A stretch of DNA of 64,000 bases from Penicillus capitatus (lineage: Eukaryota; Plantae; Chlorophyta). The stretch covers positions 298,101-362,100 of the forward strand of contig OZ287704.1 of the NCBI GenBank assembly GCA_965649825.1, read 5' to 3'. Position 1 is the stretch's first letter. Each line of letters opens with the position of its first letter. The position numbers and the translations under genes were made by a program. The notes below the pieces were generated by a model, which saw only the letters and a program-made list of their open reading frames with translations, was not told the origin of the DNA and made no database searches. Shown in pieces: positions 3,783 through 34,000 of the stretch.

Positions 3783-6700
3783 TCAGCGGCGTCGGTAACG
3801 TCGTCCTCCATACGTAAAGGAAGCCTGTCCACCGTGATGTCCTCGTCCTCCTTTCGAATACCGATGGTGACCACTGCTGTGCCAGAACTCATCCTCTTCG
3901 TCCTGCTCATGCGAAGCCAACACGCGCTCTTTGATCAACGATCGATCGGCGGCTTCTTGATTATCGTGGTCTCTCTGTCGCACGGCCATCGTCACAGACA
4001 ACGGTACCTCCAGGCGACGAGAGGTATCGTCTTTGCCGCCTTTCTTGAGCAAGACTTTGAACGGCATCTTCTCCGTCGGCATTTCTCTTTTGACATTGGC
4101 ATCGTCGATCGGTTTGATCTGATCGGGTGTCAATCTCTGATGCTCCTGTAAGAGAGCCTGTAGACCCTGTTCGAATTCGAGATCGATCTCGGGTGCGGCA
4201 TGCTTTCGCCCGTGTTCCACCACATCGTCGTCATCCAACCCCACGCCTTCGATCGACTCATCTGTCTCGGCTATTTCTTCCTGCGATTCTTCCTCGTCGC
4301 CTTCCGATCCACTCTTGCCAGCATCTGCCAGAATTCATATGTTCTGAAATGGCGTGACGTTTATAGATGGCGACATGCACCCACCTTCTTGGCTGTTGAG
4401 TTCAGCTTCGATTGCCTCGACGGCTGCGTTTGCATCTTCGAATGAAGTGAATCTGCATGTTATGTCGTCAGTCCCTCTCAGCCACATCTTTGCTTCATGT
4501 ATTGACGTACCGTTCCAAATCTGGCCTGAGATGCTCAAAGACGTCAGAAATCTCGAATTCGATGTCCATCGACAACGGAGGCTTGCTCAAGATATACCTC
4601 TGAAAATACACAAGAAAGCGATCCATCTTCTTCTTTCCGGTTCCCTTGCCAAAATAACGACCGCACGTTTTCAGAACAGTACACACCTGTCAGCACATTC
4701 TCCATCCATATCACACAAGTGCTTGAACTCGACGGCGAACCATTTTGATTCGAAAAGCGTCTCCAGGTGGATCCATCTTGGCCATCTCTTCGGGCGTCGC
4801 TCTGCCAAAGCTCAGCATCCAGTACAGCGTCTCAAATATTGTCTTGGAATCGATGAGTCTGTAGTTGTAGAGCTCTCCAAAGAAATGCACGTGAGCCACT
4901 CGATGCTGATAGAGTCCCAAAGAAGGAAGTTCCATTCCCAGTTGAATCTCCTCAAGTACAGCATCCACCACACTCACCGCCAAACTGTCATTGTACTTTG
5001 CCAGTCCCGAACACAGTGATGCCACCAGCGGAACTCGAGCATAGAGCTTGACATTAGCCTTTAGCATACAGTGCACCACAAAATTCTCATGCTCTTCCCA
5101 AGAAAGCTTTCTGAGTTTTTTCAAGACTTCACGGATGGTGCTCTCCGATAGGAAGGTGAAGATGAGATGACGGATGTACTCACGAATGGGTGGCCGTCTC
5201 TTACGCCGGACGCCACTCTTGGGCGGCTTACACTGAAAGTAAGCATTGTCAATCAATGCTCTGTGTCTGGAATCCAGATTCTTAGCGTTCTTAAGACGGT
5301 TCATCTGTTCCAGCCTGCTCTCCATGCGTCCCTGCGTCTCAGGCAGACGCACAAAATAACTGCCGGCTGTCTCGATCAAGGCGCACGCTGCGTCAATGTT
5401 CATATGTGTGAAGTCATCCAGAAGCTGCTTCAAACATGTGAACACGGTCCCATAGTTGATTAACTTGAACTTGCACAGCTCTCCCATATAACGCACGTTG
5501 CTGATCCGAGGCTCCAGTGAGTACGTGCCTGGATCCTTCTTCGCCAAGAGGGCATTGAATTCCTGTTCGAGATGGGCCGCGATGCCAGCTGCCATATCCG
5601 GAAAGACTTGACTCAGATTGGCAGTAATCCGAGCATAGAACGGAATCAACGGCAGACATCCTTTGGGAACGTCACAGAGTGCTCGATTTAGTCGTTTCTT
5701 GGTGGATTTCGAATTGATGTAGCAGAACTCGATGGAAATCTCATCCGTCATATCCCGTGTATAACAATTGCGCAGTTTCTGCAGCAATGCATCCATCTTC
5801 TTGTGTGATGTGACGGATCTCTGTTTGGCATGCATTTCTTCGCTCTCTTTTGGCGTCTGATCTCCATCTGTCGCCTCGGATGTCGTTGCTGTCGTCTCGT
5901 CTTTCTCTTCGATTCGGCCCAAGAGCAATGGAGGCACAATCGAGCGCAGATCGGGCAGAACTTCGTAGAACTCCCGAGTCTCAGCATCGTCGTAAAGCGG
6001 ATGTGTCTGTGCATCCTCAGAGACATCCACCACCTAGACAATACCCGAAGCGCTATCTGTTTCAACATATCGTCCGATGAATGGAGGGGTCACTGACCTG
6101 GACGCCGCCACCTGCAATACGTGCCATCTTGTCTTCCGGAAGGGATGGCATTGTCTTGTCCAAAGATTCTGCATAGTTCACGATCGTGCTGTACAGATGA
6201 TCGAATGCCTGCGTCCAGTCTGACGTCAGATCGCAATAAAGGAAAAGAATAAGGGAGGGTGACTTTTCGCTTGATCTCGTATTCGGCTGCAAGATTTTCT
6301 GGCAGTTCTCCCTTTGCATTGAGCACACGTGTGTTTTCATTCTCTGTGTCCCGTAGCTTCTTGTGTTCGGCAAGCACAGCCTCGAACCAACGATCCAGAG
6401 CAGATGTCATCAGTTGACGCAACTCCAATGCGTCGTTCTCCGATATACGAAATCTGCGATTGCATCCGACTCGGTTTTGCTTTTGTGAGCAGAAGGCACC
6501 GTACCGTTGATGGGTTTCTTTAACGAGCTTCTCATGTGCATCTTGTGCAGATCTCCATGCATTCCGAACCTCCTCTGATGTATCCTAGATGTGACGGATG
6601 TGACAGCGTGTCGTCAATTGCTCGATCGAGATCACTGTCGGCGGTTCTTGAAATTTCAGAATACTGAGAGACAACTGCTGAGGAAGATGGAGCATCTGAG

Positions 6701-9232: not shown

Positions 9233-12200
9233 TTATTTTGCATCGTACCATGTGACATCGGCCTTGCAGTCGACAGCCAGATCCACACGTAAGGGATTGC
9301 AGTAGCCGCCATCTGGTGTTGGAAACGGTCTCTCCATGCACTGCACGACCAATGACATAGCTTCATCTTTGAAAGCTGCGGGTCCTTCTAGGATGACTTC
9401 GTCGTGGATTTGAGAAAGAAGTCTGAAGCCCAACTGTTTTAACGGTTTATTGCTGTCGATTGCCAGCATGGCAGCTGTCACGATATCGGCTGCACTGCCC
9501 TGGATGGGCGTATTGATGGATGCCCGTTCGGCATGAGCGCGCAATCCTCCCGATGATCGGATCTCCGGAAGGTTACGTCTTCTGCCCAGCAATGTTGTCA
9601 CATAACCTGTCTGTCTGGCGTTCCGAATCGTGTTCTCTTGCCACTCTCGGACCTCTTGACGATCTGAGTACCACCTGAGGAGTGTCCATTGCATGTCATC
9701 TTTCTGTATGGCTGAAACCGATGCTCACCGTTGTAGTGTGTCTTCGGCCTCCTGGAGGCTGACCTCCCAATCCTTGGCAAGGCCATGAGGCGTCTTGCCG
9801 TAAGCGATAGAAAAATTGAGAACTTTGGCTCGGCGACGTTCGGAAGCGAAGACATCCTTCACAAGCTTCACGTCTTCACTGTCGCCGTTACCTCTCTCCA
9901 AAGCGACCTTGCCTAACAGCAGTGACTGGGATGGCCTCTGTCCAAATGGATGGTTCATGCATACATACCCTCTCTGATAGCCTCCTTGATGTGATCGTAC
10001 ATTCCGGCGGCGGTTCTGGAATGAAAGTCGCCGCCACTTTTGAAGGCTCCCAACATACTTCGGCAGTTTGTCAGATGGGCCAAAATGCGCAACTCCAGTT
10101 GCCCGTAGTCCGCCACAATCAACACATTCCCTTCTGTCGCTGTAAAAGACTGCCTCACCTGAATCCATACCACACGACACTTTGTGCAAAATCGAGAGAG
10201 CCTACCTGCCTTGTATCGATCTTTCTCCAGAGCTGGTTGGTTCTGCAGATTTGGCCGTCGGCAGCTCAACCGTCCTGTCTCAGTATTGAGATTCATGCTT
10301 CCGTGAATCCTGCCATCCGGTGTCTTAATTCTGTCATCTTGCAGCGGAAGAATAAACGATGCCAGAAGCGTCTTGATCGCACTGATCTCTAAGAGAGCTT
10401 CGACAGCGACGCATGCCTCCAGTCCTTCGCGATGATCATCAAAGGCAGCGTAGAGTGGACCCAAGCCATGTTCAGCCATCGTCTGGTTCATGATGGCGTT
10501 CTCTTCTTCGATATCTGAAACGATCGACATATCTTCATCCGGAATGCCAGAAGCGTCGGCACTGAGCAGATCGGACAGTTCATTATCGATACGGACATTG
10601 TATGTTTCTTCTAGAAGCTTCTGAGCAGCGCCAGGCTTCCCAACTAAAGCCTTTAGGGCAAGGGCGCTGACAGCTGGCCATCCAGCAGCGGTGAAGACTT
10701 TGGGGGTCAGAGGACATGGCTTTCCTTTGTCCCACAGTCCATGCAGCTCCACTGTCATCAGCTTCTTCGGTTTCTTTCCAGATTTTCCTTCTTGTATGAA
10801 CTTCGTATACTCTGGACTGTCCACCTGAACCACATCGTTGACCCTTGACTTCTTTTTAACGGATTCTGGACAGGTGTACCTTCAATTCTCGCACGAACTC
10901 GACGTAATCCATCTCGGAGTTGTTCTTGTCTCCCTCTCCGGATGCCTGCTTAGATTTCTTTTGTACCTTTCTTCGGCGAGTTCCGGCAAAGAGCAGTGTT
11001 CGAACTTGCGCATCGCTGCTTGGATTCATGTAAACGGCTCCTTCGACACGAGATCTTGCCCACGAACGAAAGCGTCCCATCGCCTTCTCCTGATCGATTT
11101 CTGCACGTGCTTGTGCCTCTTTCAGGTGCTCCGTATTTACATAGAAGCCAACATCCTCCATCTCTGTAAGGAGTTCACCAAAAGGTCGCCAGACAAGACA
11201 ATAGAAATCCCACAATGTCTTCATTTGCGGATAACAGACGCTGATGGAGGGGTCCATCACGCAACGGAACTTTGTCCGATCTTCGAGTTCGCTCTTGAGT
11301 TTGTGATAGAGATCGTACGTCGCTTTGGCATCTCTGGCAGAGTAGTAGATCCATCTCGGACGCAAGTGTTCATCCAGCTGAATCGTCTCGACGGGCGGCA
11401 CAATAACCGTAAGACCAAGGGTGCCATCTCGCTTTTCCTTGCGTTTCCCAAAAATCTTCTTCATCGAAATCTTCTTGCTCTCTGAACTCTCGAGTTTCAA
11501 CTAGACGCATGTGTCATGCAGCAGAGAGATAGTTTGGGATTCTGCACTTCTTTGGCCGTGGACAATGCTTCGAGTGAATATCCCTTTCCTTTACGAGAAG
11601 TATCCCACAGGCGTGCCATGTGCATCGTATCTCCTCCAAATCCTCGACAATGAATATGCATGTTTGTCATGACGTGGCGATCAAAACCATAATTATGCCA
11701 CACTTTCAGAAAACTACTGTCTTCGAAGAAATCCTTAAAGATTGCAAAAATCGCCTCGGTATATTCGGCGTCATCACCGTCTGATGACATGACAGCCCTG
11801 ATTTAAGATTTGTGTGACATTGGACATACCTTTGCCCATCGTGTCCACCCACAGATGCGTTTGCGGTGCCTCCGAGGACTCTTTTCCAAAATGGACATTT
11901 CCACAGTAGACAGAAAAGCACGTGACCGTTCCGTGTCCTCTCGGACTCTCTTTCAGCACATCGATGTTCTTAACCTCCGTATCACAGGCGAAGATTCGCT
12001 GCGGATTCTCTCTTAATGCCCGTCGCAATGTCGCCATGGCATGACGTGCCTATAACCAACCAACCGTCGCCTATCTCATCCATGTTTCACCGAACACGGC
12101 AGAACACCTGCTCCAGATTCTCCACAGCAAAGATTCTCTTTGCATTTTCCGACACCAAACGCTCGATCTCTTGTTCTGTACTCTGTTCTTCCTCAAGCTG

Positions 12201-13018: not shown

Positions 13019-14685
13019 ATGACGCCGGAATGGAGTGTCAAAGGAGAAGGACGCGCAAACGTGGTGTTTGAGTATACAGGCAGCGATTCTGATTGGGTAA
13101 CCCGATCGATGCTGCTCAATCGCGACACTCAATGGGTCTTCAGCGCGGAAAGGTCCTCCGAGTGGCAAAGAAACGACAGATAGAACTGGAACTCGGCGCT
13201 GAGGAGCTCGAAAAAGAGCTGTGGCAAGGGACAGCCCTGACGGACAAGACAAGTCGGTCGCTTAGCCATGTCCTTCAGTTCTGCCCGACATCGTGCTGTA
13301 GCAAGATTGGAAAAGAACGTCGCCTATGTTCAGTCCGTCATCGGGCCGAAACTCGGACAGCATTTTATTGAACATGGAGTGAGAATGCCTCGCTCTGGAT
13401 GGCGCGTCTAAGTGTGGCGGCGGTGATGATTGGTTAGAAAATTGTGGAGGTTCCACGCGATCTCTGCGTGAGGCATGGGGTCGAGTGTCAGGGATGGCTA
13501 TTGCCAGACAGCACCGTCTTTACAGAGGAAGGTATGACCGAACTAGCAGAAAGATGGATGGTTCTTTGAATGGTAGAGGAGGATGGGTGGCGTGACTGTG
13601 AACGTGTGTTTAGTCTGGAAATGAAACCAAAGTGCGGTTTCATTCCGGATGCGAAGACGATCGATGCATCGAATGCATTAAAGAAGAAAGCACCCCGTTT
13701 TCTGCTCCATCAATACCTCAAGCTCAAACAGGCGGATGACGTGCTCTGGCCTGTTCGCCAACTGACGGTTGCGTTTAGGGAAGGATCCCGCACATGAGTG
13801 ATTACTCACCATTGGAGTTATTTTCGGAGAATGTTCCCCAAATGCAACGCGCTTTGATGAAATTGATGCATAAGCCGCAGGTGCGTTCCTGCCGCTCCGA
13901 TTCTGGAAGAGAGACTCACCGTCATGGTCGATTTCCAGAATAATTTAGCGCTGTTTGTGGACGGCAAGAGACTGCCAGTGACAGAAGACGGGTTGATGAA
14001 TGCACCTGTATTTAGGGTGTTGCAAGAAGTCCTCTCTCCTCTCCTCACCCACCAGAATCGCAAAACGATTGCAGTGCTCTTAACAGATCTTGTGGCCAAA
14101 GTGCTGCACAAGGAAGGTCAGTGATCGCCATTGCGCCCTCTCTGTTGTTAAGACGTATTGCGAACAGGCATCCTGAAAAGGATTCTGGCAGTTCAGAAAC
14201 TAGATAGGTATGATATCGAAGGCATCTACCCACTCTACTGTCATCTAAGAGACCAACGCATCCGCCATGCCGCAAAGGATGGAATCTCTTGTCGATTGGC
14301 ACACGTTCCTGATCGCTTATCGACGGAAAAGAATCGCAGAACGATGAGTCTAAGTTGTCTAAAAGCTCAGGAGTCATTGAAGCAGCTCTCTGTCGATGCG
14401 CAGCTTCGTCTGCTACGAGATTGGTTGATTGCCACCACTGCAAAAGACTGCAGTATCTTTCTCACTTTCTGCGTGGTCCGAACACGCGATGGTGAGGATC
14501 GGGTGTCGTCGAAGACACGCTTTCCCCATTCGTTGACAATAGAGGACAGCAACGTTAAGCTTCTTTACAAAGTTCAGTTATGTGATTTAGACTGGAAACC
14601 GCTTTCTAAAATACCTTACCAATTTCAGCTGGACCAGCACATTCTGACAGCTGCTGAAAAGTACAGGGACGTGTATTCTTTTTGA
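13019..14685 (+). CDS. IPK1: Inositol-pentakisphosphate 2-kinase; multi-exon
   Basis: MTPEWSVKGEGRANVVFEY...GKVLRVAK, LEMKPKCGF, QKLDRYDIEG, WLIATTAKDCSI and DLDWKPLSKIPYQFQLD are IPK1 family motifs. Confidence 0.9.
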
Positions 14686-15449: not shown

Positions 15450-17242
15450 ATGAAGCTTTCTACGGCGCTCCTTTCAGTCGTTGTGCTCCTCGTGCGTCTT
15501 CATGCGAACCTGCGATTGAAAGCCTGGCTAAATGTGGAACGCAGGGGGCCTTGTCAACTGTGTCTGCACGTTCAGTTTTGACTTTGCCAGGTAGACAATC
15601 ACACCCAAACACCGTTCGTCTATGAACCATGGGACGGGGGAGACGTTAAGCTTCGCCGTTTGTCACGTCAATTTCAAAAATTCGTTGCGTCTCGTGTATC
15701 ACATTGAACGGGACGACGATGTGTCGAATTCCGCCCGAGGTTCTCTCCCTTTTTCGAGTCGAAATGGGATAGTCGGTCGGATTAGAAATGCCTGCTCGTT
15801 CTGCCTGTGACTGAGCATCGATACGTTTCTCGCTTATCGTTTGAGGAATGGATAACCGTTAGTAGAATTCCGCAGGCGAATGGTCGATTCACTTGCGCCC
15901 GGAGTCGTAGAAATTTCAAAATCGAGACAACGCATGCTTTGTCGCCCATTGAGGACGCCGATGCCTCTATCGTTTTACTAACTGCCTTCTTAACGCAACC
16001 GTTGTGAATCGATCGCTCTTTCACCACGTTCAGTCATGGGCTAACAATGGTATGATGCTTTGTAGCAGCAAAATGTGGTTATGACAGCTGCGACAAGTGT
16101 GCTTTCCCTCTCAAATGCGTGTCAGAAGAGAAGGACGAATGCAAACGTATGAGTGTTGTCTGTGTCATGATGATGCTTATGTATGTTTGTATTGAGCAGC
16201 TGTTTGCACAATTGTGAAAGACGATTGCAACAAAGGTAAGTTTGTTCCCTACACGTTTGCGTTCTTATCACATGGCTGCAGATTATGTTCCAAAGGAAAA
16301 ATGCGAGACGAAATGCGTAAAGGTGCCGTTCAAAAAGTGCGACAACAAAGAGGTGGAGAAATGTGATGTGAAAATTGAGAAAGTCTGCAAGAACGTGCCC
16401 AAGAAAGAGTGCAAACCTGTGAAGAAGCAAAAATGCGAAGATGTGCCGAAGAAGGTCTGCAAGAAAGTCCCAGATACTGTTTGCAAGAAAGTTCCCGATG
16501 TGAAATGCTACGACGTTCCAAAACAAGAATGCAAATACGTGCCAGACTGCAAAGAGGTCATTGTCCCGAAATGCATCGATGTCCCTGAGAAGAAATGCGA
16601 GAAGAAGCCTGAGAACAAATGCATTTACGTGCCGAAGAAGGTCTGCAAGAAAGTGCCAAAGACAGAGTGCCCGAAGGTTTACAAACCATGCAAGCTGGGG
16701 GACAAATATTGCACATCCCCCAAGTGCATTACCGTCTATAAGGATGAATGCAAGGTCGAGAAGGAGGAAAAGTGCACGCCTGTCTACAAAAACGATTGCA
16801 AAACCGAATATGTGAAGAAATGCGTCGACGAAAAGAAGAAGGTCTGCGACAAGAAGGAGGTCTGCTTCACTAAGACAGAGAAGAAGTGCGAGAAAACTCA
16901 GAAAGACGAATGCAAGACAATCGAGAAAGAAGAATGCGAGACCATTACAGAGACAGTGTGCAAGTATGTCGACGAAGTAGAATGCGATGACAAACTGGTG
17001 CCAAAATGCGAAGACGTTCCGAAAAAGAATTGTTACACTGTTACCGTACCTGACTGCAAGACTGAGTTCAAGGATGAGTGCAAGGAAGAATGCAAGCCCG
17101 TGCCAAGTAAGGACGACATGTCCTGTTGCGTGTGTATGAATAGTGCGTGATGCTCTTTGCAGGTATCCCTAAACCCTGTGAACCGAAGAAGGTTTGCAAA
17201 CCGGTCTGTGTAAAGAAGATTTCTTACTGTTGCAAATACTGA
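15450..17242 (+). CDS. Secreted cysteine-rich C-x7 repeat protein A (K/E/V/P-rich), about 6 exons
   Basis: Signal peptide MKLSTALLSVVVLLGALSTVSA assembled from exons 15450-15491 and 15545-15590. Main exon in ORF 16242-17150 has CKKVPxxV-type repeats; last exon ends KKISYCCKY* (TGA 17240-17242). Confidence 0.85.
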
Positions 17243-18324
17243 GGCAAGTACAGAGAAGGAGGGATACTTGTCCTGTTTTGCCGTTCTGCCATTCCGAAAC
17301 ATCAACTTATGACTCAATAGATTGTAGATAGATTATCGCTGTGTACAGTGCTGCGAATTTTCACGGATGCAATGCAGCGCCTGTGATCTCTATCTCTAAG
17401 AAGCATAAAGTATTGTTCACGAACTATTCTTGTCTGCCGAGTTGTGATAAAACGCGATTGCTGCGCGTTGGTTTCCTTTCTTTGTTGACCTGAGACTGAC
17501 ACCCCAGTTGGGAGAGCACGTCGTTGCTGAACAATCCGGTTGATTGAAATCATTTAACCTACTTGAAATTTGTGATACATGAGCTTCTTTCTCGCGTACG
17601 TTCGCCGATGTCGTGCCACGGGCAGAGTACATCTGCCGCTGTGCGAGGAGACATTCTTGGTAACATGCAAAGCGACCTGTCAGGTGACAGTTCTTATCTC
17701 TCAGACTTCCTGCCCCGTCTCAGCGGAAAAAGCTAAACCATTGATTCTGTTTCGTTTCAATACGCCATTCCATGCCTTCGTATGAAGGCTAGAATCTTCA
17801 GCTGCGTTTGAAGAACGGTCGGCTGTTTGCATGAAATTTTTCCGAGGTGGAAATGTCGAACATTTCTTGTCTCGAATGGCTCTTAGCCACAGCAGTCCTC
17901 TCAAATGGCTCAAATCGCTCACCGAGACAGTTCATCCCTTGCTGGCTTCGTACCACAGGATGTAACGCGACCTTGGACGGCCAAAGAGGCCACTGTCTAG
18001 TGGTCGAGGAACAACGAGGCAATCTATTCGTTGTATTTGAGTCAACACCAACCAACAGCCAACAACGCATTCGCTTTTCTGTGTCTCAGAGGGATTCAAG
18101 GGAGAAAACGGTTTGAAACTGTCCCCTCAGAGCAGCGGTCCTCCTGTCTCGATCTATTGATGGACATGCTGAAATCAACGTGAGGTTTGCAGAAGAAGTT
18201 CTGCCACAACCATAGGAACAGCGGTTAGATTGTTCGTGCGGGCGAGCATAAATTCTGAAGCAGGCTTTCTTTGGCACTCGACTCCACTGCACTTGCCATT
18301 TTTTTGCGAAGAATCCTGACAACG

Positions 18325-20515
18325 ATGCGTACGTTCCTGCTTTGGTCCGTTGCATGTATCCTACTGGTATGCTCTTTACCTTCTCGGCATACGCGGCATC
18401 TGAGACTACATTGCTTTAGAGTACAGCCTTCCGCTCCGAGGCACGTACCTTGCAAGGCGAAAAGGATATTGAAATCACTATCACAAGTACGAAAGCCAAG
18501 GCGTTTAGGGCGTCGACCATTAACGGATTGTCGTTGTGTAGCTTGCGACTATTGTAAGCCTGGATACAAATGCGTTGCAAAGAAGTTCCAAGCATGCTCA
18601 GACGGTACGCTTGCTTTGATATTCATAGGCCCGTGAAGAATTCTGTGTGCTGCAGAACAAATCTGCGAAGACGCGGAAGTGTGCGTTCCTGGTAAGCCTT
18701 AGCAGACGCCTCGGTCTTTGGCGGTTACACTTGTGGGTGGTGCAGATCCGAATCCGCCGAAGATTTTCTGCGAACACGAAGAGAAATGCGAGACCGTTTC
18801 CAACAAAACGTGCAAGAAGATTGACATTGAAGAGTGCGAAGAGATTATTGAAAAGAAATGTGGACCAGTTCCTCGCAAGGAGTGCAGACTGGTGGCAAAG
18901 AAAGAAAACTGCCGCATGACTCAGGAGGAAGTGTGCGACAAAGTGCCAGAGCACGTCTGCACGAAAGTCCCGAAGGAGGTCTGTGACAAAGTGCCAGACA
19001 AGGAATGCAAGAAAGTTCCGGAGAAGGTCTGCAAGAAGGTCCCCGAGAAGGTTTGCAAGAAAGTTCCCGAAGACATCTGCAAAAAAGTGCCGGAGGAAGT
19101 GTGCACAAAAGTCCCTGACAAGGAATGCAAGAAAGTTCCTGAGAAAGTTTGCAAGAAAGTTCCGGAAGACGTATGCGAAGATGTGAAGGATCAGGTCTGC
19201 ATTCCCGTTGAAAAGTGTGACAAAGTGCCACGCGAAGTCTGTAAACCAGTCGAGAAGCTCGACTGCCCTACAAAGAAAGTGGAGGAATGTAAAAAGGTCC
19301 CTCAAGAGAAGTGTGACAAGGTGAAGGTGCCATTCTGCAAGACGGTTCCCGAAGAGGAATGCAAGATCGTCAAAACCAAAAAGTGTGATAAGGTTCCAGA
19401 ACAAAAGTGTGAGAAAAAGACGAAGAAGGTGTGCGGAGACCTGGACGATGGCAAGTGTAAGACGATCCCGATTAACATCTGCAAAGAAGTGCCGAAGAAG
19501 GTCTGCAAGCCAGAGCCAAAGAAGTTCTGCGGTGACGAACTGGATGGCAAGAAGGCCGGTTTTGGATGTATCATCAAGGACGATGTCGTCTGCAAAGAAG
19601 TGTATCAAAAAGTTTGCGCAAAGATCGAGAAAGAGATCTGTAAAGGCTACGGATTCCCACTCTGCGAAGATGTCGAGGAGGAAGAGTGTGAGGAGGTGGT
19701 CGTTGACAAATGTGAAGATGTCGATGAGGAAGTGTGTGACATCGTTGACAAGAAAGTGTGTGACGAAGTCGAAGAGGACAAGTGTGAAACGATTGAAGTC
19801 GATGATTGCAAACTCGTTGACAAAACCGACTGCAAGACGATCACGGAGGAGAAATGCGAGACGATCTTGGAAAACAAGTGTACAACGGTGGACGACTGCA
19901 AGGATATCGTGAAGAAAGATTGCAAGAAGGTCGACAAAGACGTGTGCGAAGACATCGAGAAGGATGTCTGTGAAGACATCGAGAAAGATGATTGCAAGTT
20001 TGTGGAGAAAGATGTCTGCGAAAAAGTCGACAAAGACGTGTGCGATGATATCGAGAAGGATGTCTGTGAAGACATCGAGAAAGATGAGTGCAAAGATATC
20101 GAGAGAGATGTGTGCACAACGATTGAGGAAGTCGCCTGCAAAGATATCGAGAAAGAAGTGTGCAGCCTGGTAGACAAAGAGGTTTGCGATTCGAAAGAAG
20201 AACCGGAGTGTAACTATAAAGACTATGAGGAATGTATCGATACAATCAAGAAGGGCAACTGTCAACTTGTTGCCAAAGACGTCTGCAATGATGAGCCCAA
20301 GGAAGTGTGCAAGCAAGTCCCAACTGGCAAGTGTGACATTCCACCCGGTAAGGCCATATCCATGACATCTGGTTCGCTCTGATGATGAATGATCTGTAGC
20401 TGAGAAATGCGGCAATACTGCTTGTGCTTATGGTACAATGTGTGAGATAAAGAATCAATGCCGACCTGCTCACTGCAAAGAGAAGGAAGGATACTGTTGC
20501 CTGCCTCTCTGGTGA
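18325..20515 (+). CDS. Secreted cysteine-rich C-x7 repeat protein B (basic N-half, acidic C-half), about 6 exons
   Basis: Signal peptide MRTFLLWSVACILLSTAFRSEA. Main exon in ORF 18718-20382 has CKKVPEKV then CEDIEKDV repeats; last exon ends EKEGYCCLPLW* (TGA 20513-20515). Confidence 0.87.
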
Positions 20516-20904: not shown

Positions 20905-22505
20905 ATGGAGTCCGACAAGAGGTCACTCTACTGAACGCATTCATCAGCTCTCTTAGTAGCCATGAGAATCAGGCGTGGCCAATCGGTACCAAGCATCGAA
21001 GTCGCATGAAAGCAACGATGCCTATATGGAAAGGTTCGAAACGGCCTTCCGGAATCTACAGACACTCAATCTCGAGACAAAGCCCAGGTGAGAGGTCTCT
21101 AAGTTTCGCCGCCCTGTTGGTGATGATGGCGACGACTTTCAACGTGCGCGACGATTCTGATGGTCACGTGCGACGACGTGTCGTGTCACAGTTCGTCGTC
21201 GGTCGAGACGGAATACAAAGGTCCGACCTCTGCGCCATCGCCGCAGAAAAGTTACGCAAAGTCGAGATGGGCACATGCAGAAGTCCAATCAATTGCAGGG
21301 ATAGATCCAGATCCAGGTAAGGACGACGCGTAGCGGCGGCCGATCTGTGACGTCAGTATTGACAGATACATCACTCGATATCTCATCGCTTCCGCTGCTA
21401 TGCAGCAGCGTTGACGAACACGGCGACGAAATCGCCGTCGGTTCGGCAGATCACGGCGTCTACGTTGTCGATCTCGTCAAAAAACGGATCAAGCGGACGC
21501 TCTATACGAAGAGACATGGACACAGCGAGTATGTGTGTTCGCAGCCATTGGCGTACGGATCGTTATTCTGTGTCTGTCAGGTGGGTGACATGTGTGACGC
21601 ATACAGACGAGGGTCGGGTCGTTTCTGGAGGCATGGACAGCAAACTGTGTCTGTGGCACCGAGATGCGACGACATGTCTCGATCTCATCGGCCACCAAGG
21701 CTCCATCTCCGGCGTCAAATGCCATGGAGAGGCGATCGTGAGTGCCAGCTACGATAAAACAGTGAGAATCTGGAACGGTCGGAATGGCAGAGGCTATGCG
21801 ACACTTACCGAACATGCGGCGCCGATTCTGGATCTCATCTCCGGTCCGGCGCATCTCATGGCCACAAGAGATCGAGGTGGAAGCGCCATCATCTGGGATA
21901 CCGCATCGGCGGCACTCGTATGGCGTTTAAAGAAGATTCACAAAGGGCATGTGACGGCCATGGAGTGGATTCCGTCAAATGCATCCACTGCCGCACCTGA
22001 CCATCACCATTTCTTAACGGGAGGTCACGATGGGTTCCTGAGAATGTGGGATCTCCGCGATCGTGCCAATGTCTTCAAAGCCAAAGTCCACGGTGTTCGA
22101 GACACCGCCGCCGTCAACGTGATTCTGACCCATCCCGTCAACACGAATCTCCTCATCACCTGCGGCGCAGATAAAAGCGTCAAAGTACGGCGCGTCGAGA
22201 TGGATCGAAAGGACGATGTCGATGTCTAGGTCTGGGATCGTCGCGATGCCTGTGCCAGTTCGTTGTGGGAAGTGGGTCTGCTCGATTCTCCGTACTCTGC
22301 CGGATTCTTCGGTCGTCTGTTGATCTGCAGCGGAGGCGATGGATCGCTTCTCGTTTTGGACGTTGAATCGCTGGACGTCAAACAAATGATCAACACCCAG
22401 CAACACGCCATGCGGTTCATCCATGCCATTCCCAATCAGCTGATCTGTGGAGGAGATGCTGGAAACCTCTTCCTCTACAATGCCACGTCCACCTCGTCTG
22501 CTTAG
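20905..22505 (+). CDS. WD40-repeat protein of unknown function; 5' exons uncertain
   Basis: GHSEWVTCV..GRVVSGGMDSKLCLW, GHQGSISGVK...SASYDKTVRIW and HKGHVTAMEW...LTGGHDGFLRMWD repeats. Confidence 0.8.
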
Positions 22506-22724: not shown

Positions 22725-25700
22725 TCACGGGTGTTGCTTTGGAGACGTCGCTTCGTCCAAAAGGTAAACGAGACCTCTGAAATTGAATCCGCTGTGATTC
22801 GATAGTGACATCTCACATGTACGACTGGTTGAGTAACCATCTTTGCAGTCGGATGGATAGCTCATGTGTTGCAGAGCCGAAGCAGTCAGCTCAGGATATC
22901 GCATGCCACGATCGCCGGCCATCCCGCAGCAGGGAACGCCGCTGGGGACCACCTCGTGTGCACACTTGCTCGCCAGTTCCAAGAAACTGCGTTCGATGCC
23001 CATCTTCTTGGAAGAACAGGGGACATGAACGGCGATGGAATCACGAACCTTCGTAAATTCGAGCTTGTCCATCATGAAGAGCTTGAAGAAAGTGACTGGC
23101 TCATAGAGTGAGAATCTGAGTTTGGAATTGGCACCTCCGCTCTTGATCGTGTAGAGACAGGGGCTCGTGTCACACACGACAGGATATTTGCCATTCTCTG
23201 ATGCTTCGAGAATGGCTTCTTCCATTTCATTTAGTTTGTTCTGGGCAGCTGTTTTGAATCCTCTCGTGTTGAACATCATGCCGCAGCACAGGTTCTTAAC
23301 GCCCTTTGGGTAGATCACCTCAAAATTAGCTTTTTGGAACAGAGAGAGCAGCTTCTCGTGAACTGAAGCCGTTTCGGAGTCGCCATGAGCAGGTCCCATC
23401 ATACGGGTGACACAGGCGGGTATATAAACGACTTTCTGAGGCACTTTGGACGCGGATGGCTGGACTGGATAGGGATCGGGCAATTTGGATGCACCCTTTG
23501 GCATGTAAGGATTCCAGGCGGGAACATAGTTCCCCGACAGCCGATTGAGCGCCTCCGAGATTTTCACCAGCGGCGTGGAACCCATAATCCGATGCGAAAA
23601 GCTCACGGCATTCAGCAACGGTGGCACCATGGTGTTCATGAATCCAAAGTTGTTCGCCAGGGAGATCGAGATGCGATTGGCCGTTGTCTGCGGTTCCAAC
23701 AGATCCACTCTGAGCGATTTAATCAGCTCTCCCGTATTGATCTTCACCGGACACTTCTCTTGACACATGCCATCTGCTGCACACGTCTGCTCGCCCTGAT
23801 ACTCAAAGAGCTCTTCAAATTCCTTCAGCCTCTCCTCCTCCTGCGGCGTCTTCTGTGACAAGGCTCTCAAACGGTTGATCTCACGGAAGACAGTGATACG
23901 CTGACGAGGGGTCAGACTGAGATCTCTGGAAGGACAGTTACTCTCACAGAAACCGCACTCAATGCAACGGTTGACGATGTCGTGAGCTGGAGGACTAGGT
24001 TTTAAGAACTTGACGTGTGTGGAGGGATCTCTGTTGAGCACGACACCTGGATTGAGAATGTTCTCTGGATCGAACAGCGCTTTCAGTTCCCACATTAATT
24101 CATAAGCCTTCGTTCCCCATTCCATCTCCACAAAAGGTGCAACATTCCTCCCTGTTCCGTGCTCTCCTTTCAGCGATCCGCTGTACTTTGTAGCCACGAT
24201 GTAGCTCATCTCTGACATCATGTCTGAAAAACGCTGCACTTCTTCTGTGGTACGAAAGCCTTGGGAGAAGATGAGATGCAGATTGCCTTCCAGCGCGTGT
24301 CCCAGACAGCAAGCATCATTGTAACCATAGCGCTGGAACATGTCAATGAGATCTGAGGTCATGGCTGCGAGATTGTGGACGGGACATGCCACATCTTCAA
24401 TCAACATGGATGTTCCTGTCTCTCTTGCGGCGCCCACCATTGGAATCAATCCCTTGCGCACATTCCAGTATGTTGTGTAGACTTCGACATCCTCAGTGAA
24501 GGGATAGGCATCGAGTGCCTTGAGAGAATTGGCTTGGTTCCCAAAACGGATTTTCCCTTCTTCCAACACATTGCTGACCTCTTTGATGCGTTCTTTCAGA
24601 TCATCGGCCGACCGTCCTCTACACTCAATCAGCAATGCAGCTGCCATAGGGTCTGCGCCATCGATATCTGGTACGAGCTTTGGCATCGTCTCATGCAGCA
24701 TACATTCTCTGAGACATGCACGATCAAAAAGCTCAACGGCATCGACCGATGTGCCGTCTCTCAACAGCGAAGCCGCCCTGCACGACAGCTGCCTCGCTCT
24801 GATCATGTGTAAAAAGAATGGAACGTACGTGCAGGCATCTTCCAAATGCGGAAAGACAATGAACGCTGAAGCTTTGTGTGGCCATTCAGGAACGGTATTG
24901 TACGTTGCTTGAGAGATGAAAGCAAACGTCCCTTCGGATCCAATCATCAGTCTTTTGACAATCTCAATGGGATCAGAAATCGGAAAATCGACCAAAGCAT
25001 TCAGAGAGTAGCCCGTTGTACATTTGATCGAGAACTTCCTCCGAATGAGACTCACCAGTTCTCTATCCTTCTGCACGCGTTGGACGAGCGACACAATTCC
25101 AGCAATCAGCTTCTTGTGACTCTGTAGGAATGCCTCGCGACTGGCTGGGTCACTCGTGTCCAATACTGTTCCATCCGCAAAGACGATACGCATGTCCCTC
25201 AATGTATGATACGTATTCTGCGATACGCCGCAGCACATTCCTGACGAATTGTTGGCCACGATGCCGCCAATCATGCAGCTATCGATCGACGATGGATCCG
25301 GTCCGATCTTGTACTGCACGGGGAGCTTGTGTTTGTTCTGGTATGATTTGAGAATTCGATTCACTTCTCCGCCGATCAGTCCCGGCTGCACCGTGATGGA
25401 ACTCCCATCTTCCTAACAAGACCATGCCGTACTCAGTAGATGACTTTCGTCCAACTACGTGGTCCTTACATGGACTGTATAGTCTCGGAAATTCTTTCCG
25501 GTGTGCGAAAGCTTAAGTAAGACGGAATCAGTGATAGCCTGTCCCGAGAGCGATGTGCCTGCTGCTCGAAAAGTCACTGGGACTTTGTGTTTCGAGGCGA
25601 TGGGCAAAATGCGTCGAATCTCTTCTTCGTTAATCACTTTGACGACGAGTTTGGGATTGAGGCGATAGAAACTGGCGTCGGTGCCGTACGCAAAGGTTCG

Positions 25701-26078
25701 CACTTTGTCCGTGAAACAACGCTTCTCTGGGATGAAATCGCCGATCTCTTTCATGAAGTTCTGGTAGCGGCCATCATCGTGGCGCTCACCGTCGACGTTT
25801 TTGAACACTTTGGTCGCTGGATCCTTTTTGCCAACACTGTCTGCCACAGAGACGGTGCCAAACACGTCCACGGCGACATTCGGAACAAAGACCGAGTGCT
25901 CGAGGGCAGGGTCCTGCTTCGGTGCTGTCATGACGCTTCGTGTGCTCTCTGATATGGGCTCGCGCGACACGGCACTGGTCGAGACGATGCGCATCGACGC
26001 AGTACAGGATGACGACGATGGGTGTCGCAGCTCCTGCGCCAGAGACGCGAGGGTTTTGCTCAACTGCCGGCGCATCAT
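22725..26078 (-). CDS. GYD1: Mitochondrial FAD/Fe-S glycolate (D-lactate) dehydrogenase, chlorophyte GYD1 type (FAD_binding_4, FAD-oxidase C, 4Fe-4S, CCG domains)
   Basis: Arg/Ser-rich presequence MMRRQLSKTLASLA (ATG 26078); YGTDASFYRLNP, FRAAGTSLSGQA, SLKGEHGTGRN, CIECGFCESNCPS, CAADGMCQEKCP and CCGMAGDRG. A probable in-frame 51-nt intron lies near 24770-24820. Confidence 0.9.
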
Positions 26079-26373
26079 TGTCAGTAAAGTGGGAAGAAGA
26101 GCGACAACGCGCTGAAACAGCAAATCTTGTAGAATTTATACTACTGTCATTTGAGGGTCGCGATGATGCGACGGACGTGCATCGAGTCAATCGAACGTCA
26201 TGCTGCAGTAGATGGCGGAGAGACTGGAGGTGTCTTGATATCGTCAATCTCTCGACTGGCCATCCATTGATCGAAAGCGATGGACAGGAGAGCAGGATCG
26301 TCCGTGGCTTGTTGCTTGAGATGATCATACAGACACGTCGACGCATCTAATTAAGAAATTCGGCTCGCTCGCC

Positions 26374-31085: not shown

Positions 31086-34000
31086 ATGAATTCACAGTCA
31101 CGACTCAGGACCTTAATGTCACGACCATTCAATCGATTTTTTACGGACAAACGACAGGAACCAGTGAAGGAGTTCAGTGAAGATGATCAGAAACGTATGC
31201 GGCGGATGTTGAGCAGAGGTATCGTGAGTGTGCGGGAACTGGTTGACCGATACAACAAATCTGACGACACACATCGCAAACTGCTCCTTCCTTGGCTCAA
31301 GGACTTTATCAAATACATTGACGACACAGCAGGTGTGGGTCTGAGAGGTGGTCGATTTCTGGAATACGCAGAACTTGCGAATGTCAGCATCCACAGTGAG
31401 AAAGACAAAGAATTTCTGCAGAATCTCCTTGAAAGCTTGAGCAAGAGAATTAAAGAGGAGAATGATTTTTCGACAGAGCACCTCTTTGACGCATTGCATG
31501 ATGTTCTCATGCGCATGGACCCGAAAGCGTTCGAAAATCGCGGGATTAAATTGAGACAGCTGGTGGACAATTTGATTGCGGCGCTCGAACAGCAAGGGGA
31601 TGTTCCCGATCACTTGCTGGCAAGGCACAGAACTCCCATTTACGCAATCCACCAAGCCCTTTTTCTCCTAAAAAATACGCCGGGATACAAACTGACTGAA
31701 AAGATACAAATAGAGCTGTTTCAGAATATCGAAAAATGCCAAATAGTAGGGATCGAAAAAAACTTCTATCCCTATCACTACCAATGCCGTTTGGTTAAAC
31801 AAGGAATTTTGCGATTAACGGCCAAGACAGAGAAGCCGCCATGGATACAGAGACTCCATGCTTCTCTTTATGCCTGCTGGGGTGGGATGTACTTTCTTCA
31901 CATGCTGAAAGGTCTCTGTGCATTGGATTGCGATCCGAGTGCCGCTGAGGGCGTTATGAAGAACTTAATAGAAGCGCGCAGAAGACTCAACATGTTGACC
32001 ACAGAAGTTTGGTACGATAAACTTCAGGCATATCATGAATCCATCATCAAGAGTCCGATGGACGCTGCTGGTGTCGAATCCGAGACAATTTTGAAAGAAG
32101 TGCCGGAGAAATCGGCGAAGGACCTGCTGTTTGGTATCCTTCGTGAACTCTCGACTGCTGTGCTTTCTGATCACGAATCGTTAAGCAGTGAATCGTCTAC
32201 GCTGGCAAGTACCTGTTTCGAGAGACTGTCTAGCACGCTGGACATGTTGAGCGCCAAAATCGGACAGCAGGATTTCAAGAATGATCCGTCCTTTCTCGAG
32301 CCAGTTCTTAATGCGCTCTGCGAGATATATATTCGTAACAGTGATTATAGAGAGAAAACATGGTCAATTCTGGAACGTCTCGCATTGAATCAAGAATTCC
32401 AGTCTAAAAAGCTGCTGCCTTCTTGGGCGAAAGATGAAGAAACTTTGGAAACGCATATCAGGGATCTCTCGAGGAATCTGAAAGGCAGTCGACACAACAT
32501 TCTCTTCCATGAGGTTCGATCGAATCTTACCTGGTGGGTGGATGATGAAGATTTGACCACGGTCGCGGAGGCATTGAAGAAAGCGTACACTAAATCGGAT
32601 CCCAGCAGCGTAAATCAACACCTATCTCGAAATCGAATCGTCAACAATATCGTTGTGTTCTTGCAGATGCAATCGCCTTCGGTCCACTCAAGGAAGATGG
32701 AGATCGAAGATCTAAGATTTTCCTTTGCTATTCGGGGCGCTGTCTGTTCAGACGAAACGAACATCTTGGCATCGGATGAGAGCCGGCGCTCGTGGTGGCA
32801 GCAGGAAATGCCAAAGAGAATGGAACTTGGCCTTGCAGATATCTTAATAGAGAACAAGATTCCTGGCTTGGCAAAAATCGAATCTGGAAAAGCTCGCAGA
32901 GTTCTCTTGACGGGAAGGCCATGTACTGGGAAGTCGACTTTGGGCAGAAAAATTGCGCGCGGCTGGGCGAATGGCTCTATCATCGAAGGCTTCGACATGG
33001 TGTACGTGCTCGATTCTAAAATGATCTACAGTGGACATGATCGCAGTCAGGATGTATCCTCTGCCCGGAAGACTTTGCAACAGATGACAGCAACAAGTCT
33101 GATATCAGAATTTAGGATAGATTTCACGGATGACTTGGAAAAAGTTATTGATCATAATCTGGATCTCGATACCACTTTGCTTATCATCGACGTCGCAACG
33201 ACAGGGGATTTCATGTATAAATGGATCCAGCAGGCGATGCAACGATCATGCAGTTTGCTCGTGTTACGAGATCCCATCAGTGCGTGGCGTGGTGAGGTGA
33301 AATTCGATGTCGAATTGGAATTGATTGGGCTGACGGACGATCAGATGATTGCCGACATTACTGAGTACTTTGAAGGACGTGCACAAACGGCACGTGACCT
33401 GAAGTCCTTCTTGGGAAGGAGTCCAGATGTCAGGCGAATGGCGCATCATCCATTGACGCTGGAAACGCTGTGCCATATGTGGGATAACTCCGAGAAGGGA
33501 CAAGACCACATTTCAACGATTCCTCGATCTGCCTTGTATTCCAATGTGATCGATTGCATCACTATGAAACGTACTAACGAATTTGGAAGAACGAAGGACC
33601 AGAAGGAATTCCTCTACGATCTGCAGTCGGCAGTTTTCAACCATCTGATCAAGAGCAGCCCTGCGAATTGGACTGGATTCGATGGGGAGGTCCACATCCC
33701 GTCGGTGGCTATCAAGAAAATCACTTCATCGTTGATGCAGCCTAAAGATATGGATGATGTTTTGAAGTTTAAAGCGTATTTCTTTGGAAAGCATATCGCC
33801 AGTATTCAGAGGGGAGACAACAAGAAGGAGAGAGAACATGTAGACGCCTTCTTGATGGATCATATGTACGAGAGTTCGTGCATGACGGCCATGTGCATTG
33901 CCGTTGAAGACACTGCCGATCACGCGCCTACGACGATGGAGCTGCTGTTATCGTTCGTCGAGGAAAAAGCGGCCGAGACCATCGGTCTGCAGCCTCTGCT

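Follow-up and report, generated by a model that had tools for sequence, protein, structure and literature searches.

A tandem pair of secreted, cysteine-rich proteins in the green alga Penicillus capitatus that are predicted to fold as giant cystine-ladder beta-hairpin rods

What kind of molecule is built by proteins with a cysteine in each of dozens of successive octads is the question raised by two neighboring genes, hereafter gene 1 and gene 2, at positions 15450-20515 of a 64,000-nucleotide stretch of Penicillus capitatus DNA (contig OZ287704.1 of assembly GCA_965649825.1, positions 298,101 to 362,100; hereafter the window). A preliminary description of this locus, made from the letters alone, had proposed a family of secreted, molecular-ruler-like rods that share end caps and are tuned in length by symmetric gain of repeats. 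Using gene modeling, analysis of the cysteine spacing, homology searches and structure prediction, we arrive at the view, to which we give somewhat better than an even chance, that each chain is a giant cystine ladder, i.e. a single long beta-hairpin rod with a predicted disulfide rung every 8 residues. We also show that the two genes belong by design to a broader, unannotated class of proteins with mirrored cysteine ladders.

Both genes lie on the forward strand, with the ATG of gene 1 at exactly 15450 and the stop codon of gene 2 ending at exactly 20515, and are separated by 1082 nucleotides (nt; from the stop at 17242 to the ATG at 18325), close to the 1.1 kb given earlier. Gene 1 (15450-17242) and gene 2 (18325-20515) each have six exons and code for 369 and 641 amino acids (aa) respectively (Table 1). 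All ten introns are of the GT-AG type and nine of them measure 46-56 nt, while the two genes agree in every intron phase and in the lengths of exon 1 (42 nt) and exon 4 (36 nt). The signal peptides, which we assigned by the rule of a hydrophobic start with small residues at -3 and -1, straddle exons 1 and 2 in both models (MKLSTALLSVVVLL/GALSTVSA in gene 1 and MRTFLLWSVACILL/STAFRSEA in gene 2, with the slash at the exon junction), and the predicted cleavage contexts are ...VVLLGALSTVSA/RS and ...ILLSTAFRSEA/RT. Intron 1 of gene 1 is not readable through, since the frame meets a stop, and exon 2, with which a canonical signal peptide is completed (V at -3 and A at -1), is the sole phase-compatible exon that gives intron 1 a length of 53 nt. 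The boundary of this exon is the least certain of the locus because its GTAGAC donor is weak and the intron that follows (15591-16065) is 475 nt long; this intron might hide a small exon, or the boundary might differ. In gene 2 a reading of the sequence indicates that excision of intron 1 forces that of intron 2 too, as the frame otherwise stops. With both introns kept, which together add up to 108 nt, gene 2 can be read without a stop from before the ATG as far as exon 3 (18271-18636), and their retention would yield an in-frame, Arg-rich N-terminus with extra cysteines (...DCRCVACDYC...). The split signal-peptide layout, and the placement of the caps in small exons with the repeat ladder in one large exon, had been noticed at the outset and hold in both gene models.

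The mature gene 1 protein would have 347 aa (~40 kDa, pI ~9.4, net charge +22) and that of gene 2 619 aa (~70 kDa, pI ~4.9, net charge -37), with a similar composition in both (Cys 13-14%, Lys 19-25%, Asp+Glu 19-26%, Val 12-13%). The whole proteins align in BLASTP with an e-value of 1e-22 and 35% identity, the alignment beginning at the signal peptide; by sequence, the two are paralogous genes for secreted proteins. Outside the coding repeats we found no DNA similarity between the two loci, and therefore the duplication appears to be old; a tblastn search recovered no third paralog in the window. The strings on which the claim of shared caps had been founded are all present, namely CDKCAFPLKCV and CDYCKPGYKCV at the N-terminal side, and SYCCKY and GYCCLPLW directly before the stop codons. 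When the caps are aligned on their own, the claim holds for the C caps, whose score was reached by none of 5000 shuffles and by 6/5000 when the cysteines were kept fixed, but the N cap alone is marginal (206/5000 full shuffles and 1304/5000 with fixed cysteines). The latter figure indicates that the likeness of the N caps rests mostly on the spacing of their cysteines. The terminal introns are in turn supported by the homology of the spliced C caps to each other and to their counterpart in Bryopsis (see below).

To describe the cysteine pattern we list the gaps between successive cysteines, with 8x9 denoting nine consecutive gaps of 8. Gene 1 reads 5 3 6 8 4 7 10 4 in the N cap, 8x9, 6, 8x5 in the N arm and 7 7 5 in the hinge, followed by 8x5, 6, 8x9 in the C arm and 4 10 6 4 7 1 in the C cap. 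Gene 2 reads 3 6 8 6 6 11 6 in the N cap, 8x4, 9, 8x12, 6, 8x13 in the N arm and a single 13 in the hinge, followed by 8x13, 6, 8x14, 9, 8x4 in the C arm and 5 6 6 5 7 1 in the C cap. Gaps of exactly 8 thus make up 28/47 of the total in gene 1 and 61/78 in gene 2. The gene 1 list is palindromic about the hinge, down to the single 6-residue unit of each arm and the 4 and 10 gaps of the caps: in 18 consecutive pairs, Cys7-24 against Cys44-27, the two partners have residue numbers that add up to 415, and shuffling of the gap list reached the ungapped mirror score in 27/5000 trials and the gapped score in 0/1000. The gene 2 list is likewise palindromic with matched 6- and 9-residue units, its gapped mirror score being reached by 1/1000 shuffles. 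The initial reading that the N-terminal side carries two more cysteines than the C-terminal side in both proteins is correct for gene 1 (25 against 23, with C1 and C2 as the extra ones) but not for gene 2 (39 against 40). The first cap cysteine of gene 2 (18544, in CDYC) appears homologous to Cys2 of gene 1; its likely partner, Cys1, is absent from gene 2, and hence it may be a free thiol that could be used for an intermolecular bond.

The two arms differ in their chemistry. The consensus of the N arm, C-[KDE]-K-V-P-[EKD]-[KE]-[VEK], is basic with one Pro per octad, and that of the C arm, C-[KE]-[DT]-[VI]-[EDY]-K-[DE]-[VEK], is acidic and free of Pro. The N arm carries a net charge of +16 in gene 1 and +14 in gene 2, and the C arm one of -4 and -46, respectively. 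The charges of mirrored units are anticorrelated both in gene 1 (r=-0.48; permutation p=0.033) and in the inner 13 units of gene 2 (r=-0.68). On the cysteine face of gene 1, the direct cross-strand charge pairs comprise 10 favorable and 0 unfavorable ones. In gene 2 the charge pairing is best in the predicted register, with a favorable-to-unfavorable count of 21:7 in the inner and 19:2 in the middle section.

A further line of evidence comes from two tandem arrays in gene 2, one in each arm, which are exact mirror partners under the register set by the hinge (unit i with unit 78-i). The N-arm array is built of CKKVPEKV-type units with 24/72-nt periods, and that of the C arm of CEDIEKDV-type units with 48/96-nt periods (82-88% matches at period 96 in Tandem Repeats Finder, TRF). 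The two arrays go back to separate duplications, which differ in both unit size and sequence. That separately arisen arrays should come to face each other is as predicted by compensated growth of a paired structure: tandem duplication of octads would change the length, and the register would be kept only with matching gains in both arms, which would account for the mirroring of irregular units and young arrays alike. The invariant V4 and P5 in the arrays are each written with 3-4 synonymous codons, and the three identical CKKVPEKV units of gene 2 differ from each other only synonymously, a pattern that points to purifying selection on the peptide.

To place these proteins in a wider context we ran word-indexed searches with both of them, which gave 25 and 29 weak matches, and an HMMER search with the gene 1 large exon over 1.84 billion representative sequences, which gave 216 matches with e-values of at most 1e-3 (best 5.5e-26), none of them annotated. 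No close orthologs were found by the two word-indexed searches and the full HMMER scan, and a scan of Joint Genome Institute (JGI) metagenomes with the gene 2 exon returned 58 pattern matches, of which none was confirmed. The antisense strand of the gene 2 large exon (18598-20415, reverse strand) is open for 605 aa, as against 554 aa of the sense open reading frame (ORF); since the antisense frame is the longer one, gene callers of the prokaryotic style may choose the wrong strand, which may explain the missing gene 2 orthologs in related ORF sets and means that the class may be under-reported. Searches of the literature on cysteine-rich proteins of Bryopsidales, cysteines at every eighth residue, the Caulerpa wound plug and the Bryopsis genome gave nothing on the family.

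Just two matches have cap motifs in common with gene 2, namely BSKO_06085 of Bryopsis sp. KO-2023 (P0024) and a Logan transcript (P0021). The N-cap motif C..GY.C takes the form CKPGYKC in gene 2, CRKGYSC in P0024 and CRDGYEC in P0021 (alignment reached by 26/5000 shuffles), and CAFPLKC of gene 1 matches it in spacing only. The C-cap motif CG...C..G..C is seen in gene 2 as CGNTACAYGTMC and in the two relatives as CGKNTCELGQKC and CGDSVCKIGQTC (8/5000 shuffles reach the score), but gene 1 lacks this module (3643/5000). Like gene 2, both relatives come from Bryopsidales and combine a signal peptide and C-x7 octad arms with both cap motifs; they differ from the Penicillus pair in their low identity (27-29%; e-values of 1e-4 to 4e-6) and in the lack of a YCC terminus. 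BSKO_06085 is multi-exonic with small terminal exons, as are genes 1 and 2, but is a single gene at a non-syntenic locus, and P0021 is intron-free. Together, the paralogy and shared exon plan of genes 1 and 2 and the existence of these relatives uphold the early suggestion of a gene family, and on the sequence evidence the four proteins form a small bryopsidalean family.

The remaining matches include the copepod protein TCAL_07128 of Tigriopus californicus (P0150) and many proteins from marine metatranscriptomes, which have the design in common with genes 1 and 2 but not the caps. They likewise display a signal peptide and one C-x-x-V-P arm together with one Pro-free T/V/Y/E arm; unlike in genes 1 and 2, the order of the arms is swapped with the VP arm last, the linkers are often 100-300 residues long, the caps are of other types, and some of the proteins have extra domains. 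None of them has a Pfam domain or a name. Their gap patterns are again mirrored, e.g. 12, 8x7, 6, 8x4 on one side of a 146-residue gap with 8x4, 6, 8x7, 12 on the other, or 20 8 16 8 12 8 16 8 and 8 16 8 12 8 16 8 20 on either side of a gap of 9. Of 189 related proteins, 74 have exactly mirrored runs that are 6 or more gaps long and contain irregular gaps, and 747 of the 753 gaps within the mirrored arms are even (6, 8, 12, 16, 20), as expected if all cysteines are on one face of a beta-strand. Where a cysteine is missing from one arm (a gap of 16 or 20), its mirror partner is missing from the other, and such paired loss classically marks two residues that are bonded to each other. By their design genes 1 and 2 also belong to a broader, unannotated class of mirror-symmetric octad-cysteine proteins, whose likeness might reflect either homology or convergence. 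The proteins P0146, P0173, P0176, P0180, P0184-P0188 and P0196, all from outside the window, make up a distinct unannotated family in which a signal peptide and a mirrored ladder (12, 8xN, 6, 8, then a gap of 5-10, then 8, 6, 8xN, 13) are combined with a conserved domain of ~250 aa at the C-terminus.

A structural view of such a ladder was obtained by running AlphaFold2 on one of the marine metatranscriptome families, that of P0153, with an alignment of 15 sequences. The result was one hairpin with strands at 50-133 and 155-238 (84 residues each), the predicted local distance difference test (pLDDT) score being ~85-95 along the strands and 74-95 per 10-residue block across the hairpin region. 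The ladder cysteines of P0153 span 50 to 238 and the positions of all nine mirror pairs sum to 288, from which it follows that the model sets each cysteine opposite its partner. In arm-to-arm alignments the VP arm of gene 1 aligns with the VP arm of P0153 and the other arm with the other, with the chain order swapped. Transfer of the P0153 fold to genes 1 and 2 rests on the shared octad types and the mirror spacing. Foldseek searches of the PDB with the P0153 model recovered only long hairpins, i.e. phage tail and knob proteins and pore stems (e-values down to 1e-5), with template modeling (TM) scores of 0.07-0.17 that indicate a different fold.

On these grounds we infer the following fold, disulfide connectivity and rod size for the products of genes 1 and 2. 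As read from the sequence, in each chain the N cap comes first and the basic arm, built of C-x-x-V-P-x-x-x octads, second; past a short hinge follow the acidic arm, whose octads are of the Pro-free form C-x-x-[VI]-[ED/YT]-x-x-x, and the C cap. Folding back at the hinge would give one two-stranded antiparallel beta-ribbon, in which each N-arm cysteine would be disulfide-bonded in the endoplasmic reticulum to the facing mirror cysteine of the C arm, making a ladder with a predicted ~22 rungs for gene 1 and ~38 for gene 2, spaced 8 residues apart. The even spacing would put all cysteines on one face of the ribbon, at the non-hydrogen-bonded sites where disulfides form; the Pro at octad position 5 shares the parity of the Cys, so that it too would occupy a non-hydrogen-bonded site and no hydrogen bond of the ladder would be lost. 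Positions 3 and 7 of the opposing arms would face each other, making K-D/E pairs possible beside each rung, and the V/I at positions 4 and 8 would point to the opposite face. The resulting rod would be stiff and resistant to proteases and, at ~0.33 nm per residue, would measure ~45-50 nm in the case of gene 1 and ~85-95 nm in that of gene 2.

Several observations weigh against this giant-ladder reading. AlphaFold2 gave no usable model of the gene 1 large exon without an alignment (pLDDT 36), and hence the fold is transferred from a distant family with swapped arm order. For gene 1, the total residue-level charge pairing after whole-rung shifts is at least as good as that of the true register. 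The symmetry of gene 2 is broken in one section, which counts 14 octads in the C arm and 12 in the N arm, the two surplus octads being located past the tandem array and before the 9-residue unit; the mature protein also has an odd number of cysteines (79). The Bryopsis homologs have an irregular cysteine-rich center in place of a simple hinge, and their arms are mirrored only in part. The rods and the symmetric repeat gain, the strongest parts of the original proposal, are supported by the mirrored spacing, the matched odd-length units, the mirrored gene 2 arrays and the hairpin modeled for the related family, but the symmetry of gene 2 is imperfect. The unpartnered C-arm octads of gene 2 lie at 20185-20259 (units 66-68).

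The mirror symmetry as such demands only that N arms pair with C arms and not that the two belong to the same chain. The ladder could hence form between chains, as domain-swapped dimers or head-to-tail polymers that yield a covalent fiber network, and the 100-300-residue linkers of the copepod-type relatives, the odd cysteine count of gene 2 and the opposite net charges of the two proteins would all be in keeping with this. We nevertheless regard it as unlikely: the hinges are very short, that of gene 1 consisting of three nested loops bounded by Cys and that of gene 2 of 12 residues, which favors intramolecular closure, and AlphaFold2 models the related P0153 as a monomeric hairpin. An equally small share of the probability goes to the absence of any defined fold, with the proteins acting as flexible Cys/Lys-rich substrates, comparable to the SPRR proteins of the cornified envelope or the proline-rich proteins of plant walls, that are insolubilized, perhaps in the wall or a wound plug, by intermolecular disulfide, Lys or Tyr cross-links. 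The abundance of Lys in the mature proteins, several VYK/YVPK motifs in gene 1, the failure of single-sequence AlphaFold2 to give a confident structure, and a match of the gene 2 VP arm to Pfam Cornifin, which is likewise an 8-residue repeat of the Cys/KVPEP type (31.4 bits; e-value 2.5e-7), would suit such a role. Disorder, however, offers no reason for mirrored cysteines, matched 6- and 9-residue units, even-only gaps and anticorrelated arm charges; moreover, the match to Cornifin does not reach the gathering cut-off (34.8 bits), and SPRR proteins generally have no signal peptide.

It is more improbable still that the octads are short Pro-capped alpha-helices, with each arm a helical-screw solenoid and the two arms packed side by side with the cysteines in the core. 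This arrangement is prompted by the sole sequence match in the PDB, that of the VP arm to HeliScrew4 (9zem; e-value 1.3e-6) with the Pro in register, but HeliScrew4 has no Cys, the beta-branched residues V, I and T dominate the fixed positions, the 6-residue units and the 12/16/20 gaps of the relatives suit the parity of a strand and not a helical repeat, and AlphaFold2 gives pure beta structure for a relative with the same C-x-x-V-P octad. There is, finally, very little to be said for the view that these are not genes but chance reading frames in a low-complexity tandem repeat, as the open antisense frame of the gene 2 large exon and the absence of any exact or near-exact protein record might suggest. 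Against it stand the ten GT-AG introns of narrow size range, the conserved exon lengths and phases, the signal peptides of both proteins, 35% identity between paralogs without loss of frame, the diversity of synonymous codons at invariant residues, and homologs that include an annotated Bryopsis gene and a transcript.

Other known classes of proteins were also considered as candidates and rejected. Metallothionein-like binders have clustered C-x-C, C-C or C-x-x-C motifs and are cytosolic; in the products of genes 1 and 2 the cysteines are 8 apart except in the caps, and both have a signal peptide. Proline-rich and hydroxyproline-rich wall glycoproteins have contiguous Pro/Hyp repeats (SPPPP, PPVYK) and few Cys, whereas here just one of the arms has Pro, once in each octad, Cys amounts to 13-14%, and VYK motifs are isolated and confined to gene 1. 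A search of both large exons against Pfam gave no family match, only the sub-threshold Cornifin hit and noise: for Cornifin/SPRR (PF02389) the gene 2 large exon falls short of the cut-off (31.4 against 34.8 bits) and gene 1 has no match at an e-value of at most 1, and both proteins have signal peptides and Cys-cap ends. We likewise rejected the idea that the symmetry stems from an inverted repeat in the DNA; the arms differ in consensus, and the protein encoded by a reverse-complement repeat would not be mirrored.

The rods might perhaps serve as structural or cross-linking elements of the wall or the secreted matrix, and could act as nanoscale spacers of defined length; they are candidates for a little-known protein part of the walls, trabeculae or wound plugs of giant single-celled algae. 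The basic and the acidic protein may also associate with each other, which is suggested only by their opposite net charges (+22 against -37) and the unpaired cysteine of gene 2. More tentatively, and with less than even confidence, we propose that these proteins represent a new class of fibrous protein, a disulfide-stapled beta-ribbon of tens of nm whose length is set by octad number and can change only by compensated duplications, present in siphonous green algae as well as marine arthropods and plankton, with the basic 45-nm and acidic 90-nm rods co-assembling extracellularly. If the ladder is correct, it would be a fold principle that has no solved structure, Pfam family or literature and yet is found in hundreds of protein clusters of algae and marine animals. 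It would also be a clean natural case of structural co-evolution of repeat number, where an insertion in one arm needs a match in the other.

Table 1. Exons, repeat sections and flanking genes of the two-gene locus (positions in the window; a slash marks the predicted signal-peptide cleavage site)
Feature	Position	Strand	Remarks
Gene 1 exon 1	15450-15491	+	42 nt; ATG; signal peptide residues 1-14; GTGCGT donor
Gene 1 exon 2	15545-15590	+	remainder of signal peptide, ...GALSTVSA/RSVLTLP
Gene 1 exon 3	16066-16146	+	N cap, KCGYDSCDKCAFPLKCVSEEKDEC
Gene 1 exon 4	16200-16235	+	36 nt; N cap with two Cys; length and phase match gene 2 exon 4
Gene 1 exon 5	16282-17106	+	entire ladder
Gene 1 N arm, Cys9-Cys24	16314-16670	+	C-x-x-V-P octads
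Gene 1 hinge, Cys24-Cys27	16668-16727	+	
Gene 1 C arm, Cys27-Cys42	16725-17081	+	
Gene 1 exon 6	17163-17242	+	C cap, ...CEPKKVCKPVCVKKISYCCKY and stop; preceded by a 56-nt GT-AG intron
Gene 2 exon 1	18325-18366	+	42 nt; start of signal peptide
Gene 2 exon 2	18420-18486	+	end of signal peptide and short pro-region, STAFRSEA/RTLQGEKDIEITIT
Gene 2 exon 3	18542-18604	+	N cap, TCDYCKPGYKCVAKKFQACSD
Gene 2 exon 4	18656-18691	+	36 nt; N cap with two Cys
Gene 2 exon 5	18746-20347	+	ladder
Gene 2 N arm, Cys8-Cys39	18787-19530	+	
Gene 2 N-arm tandem array, units 14-23	18934-19173	+	CKKVPEKV type; 24/72-nt periods; TRF 18929-19166
Gene 2 hinge loop	19531-19566	+	GDELDGKKAGFG
Gene 2 C arm, starting with Cys40	from 19567	+	
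Gene 2 C-arm tandem array, units 55-64	19921-20160	+	CEDIEKDV type; 48/96-nt periods; TRF 19930-20153
Gene 2 exon 6	20400-20515	+	C cap, AEKCGNTACAYGTMCEIKNQCRPAHCKEKEGYCCLPLW and stop; preceded by a 52-nt GT-AG intron
Inositol-pentakisphosphate 2-kinase exon	14158-14685		flanks the locus
WD40 gene	21411-22229		flanks the locus

The window as a whole is nuclear DNA of a chlorophyte whose GT-AG introns are uniformly short, and is dense in housekeeping genes. At 45719-47086 an exon for threonyl-tRNA synthetase has 94% identity with unnamed proteins of large ENA metagenome contigs, 78% with Caulerpa lentillifera and 73% with Bryopsis sp. KO-2023, which places the alga in the Bryopsidales, the siphonous green algae. 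Besides the two genes that flank the locus, ordinary neighbors include exons of a family-A (organellar-type) DNA polymerase (9233-11500, reverse strand), a gene of the FAD-oxidase/4Fe-4S D-lactate-dehydrogenase-like type (22725-26123, reverse strand), and those for a SWIRM+Myb protein (1781-3172, forward strand) and a MIF4G protein (4711-6033, reverse strand). On the forward strand at 31086-35666, one ORF of 1526 aa has HEAT-type repeats at its C-terminal end, contains a Walker A motif (GRPCTGKST) and resembles STAND/NLR-like NTPases; an exact-sequence look-up of this ORF gave no recorded protein. The region 37636-62427 is collinear, at ~85% DNA identity, with two contigs (368 kb and 1.6 Mb) of the ENA assembly ERZ26696514, which are 99% identical to each other and probably represent two haplotypes of a sister species; ~7 kb of the window at 50.6-57.5 kb correspond to ~1.6 kb in that relative.

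The searches of Pfam, the PDB and the literature gave no solved or annotated counterpart of the predicted rod architecture, and its closest parallels each have a part of it. SPRR/cornifin proteins, the best Pfam match, resemble genes 1 and 2 in their period of 8 residues, with a single Cys and K-V-P-E at the core of the repeat. They are, however, cytosolic, transglutaminase-cross-linked proteins with Gln/Lys-rich ends, and have no signal peptide, acidic partner arm or mirror symmetry. The hairpins of phage tail and knob proteins and of beta-pore stems are long and two-stranded like the P0153 model, but are shorter than the predicted rods, lie inside oligomeric barrels or tubes and have no disulfide rungs. 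Our sequence search of the PDB gave no related solved structure, bar the repeat-pattern match to HeliScrew4, which has Pro at helix position N1 (bioRxiv 10.64898/2025.12.04.691947) and shares with the gene 2 VP arm an 8-residue period and a fixed Pro; unlike gene 2 it is designed, Cys-free and alpha-helical, and the match is a coincidence of repeat pattern. The nearest precedent in architecture is the cystine ladder itself, a motif that Conibear et al. 2012, as cited in PMC6327110, defined for theta-defensins. In these peptides, as in two-rung hairpin peptides such as gomesin and tachyplesin, two antiparallel strands are joined by parallel disulfide rungs, just as is proposed here for genes 1 and 2. 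There is no sequence relationship between them, and the theta-defensin-type peptides have ~18 residues and 2-3 rungs with the cysteines 2 apart, and are often cyclic and antimicrobial; the algal proteins are of 40-70 kDa, with ~22-38 predicted rungs 8 apart, 130-250 residues per strand and ordinary termini. If the prediction is true, the cystine-ladder hairpin would thus have been enlarged about ten-fold into a rod whose length is genetically programmed.

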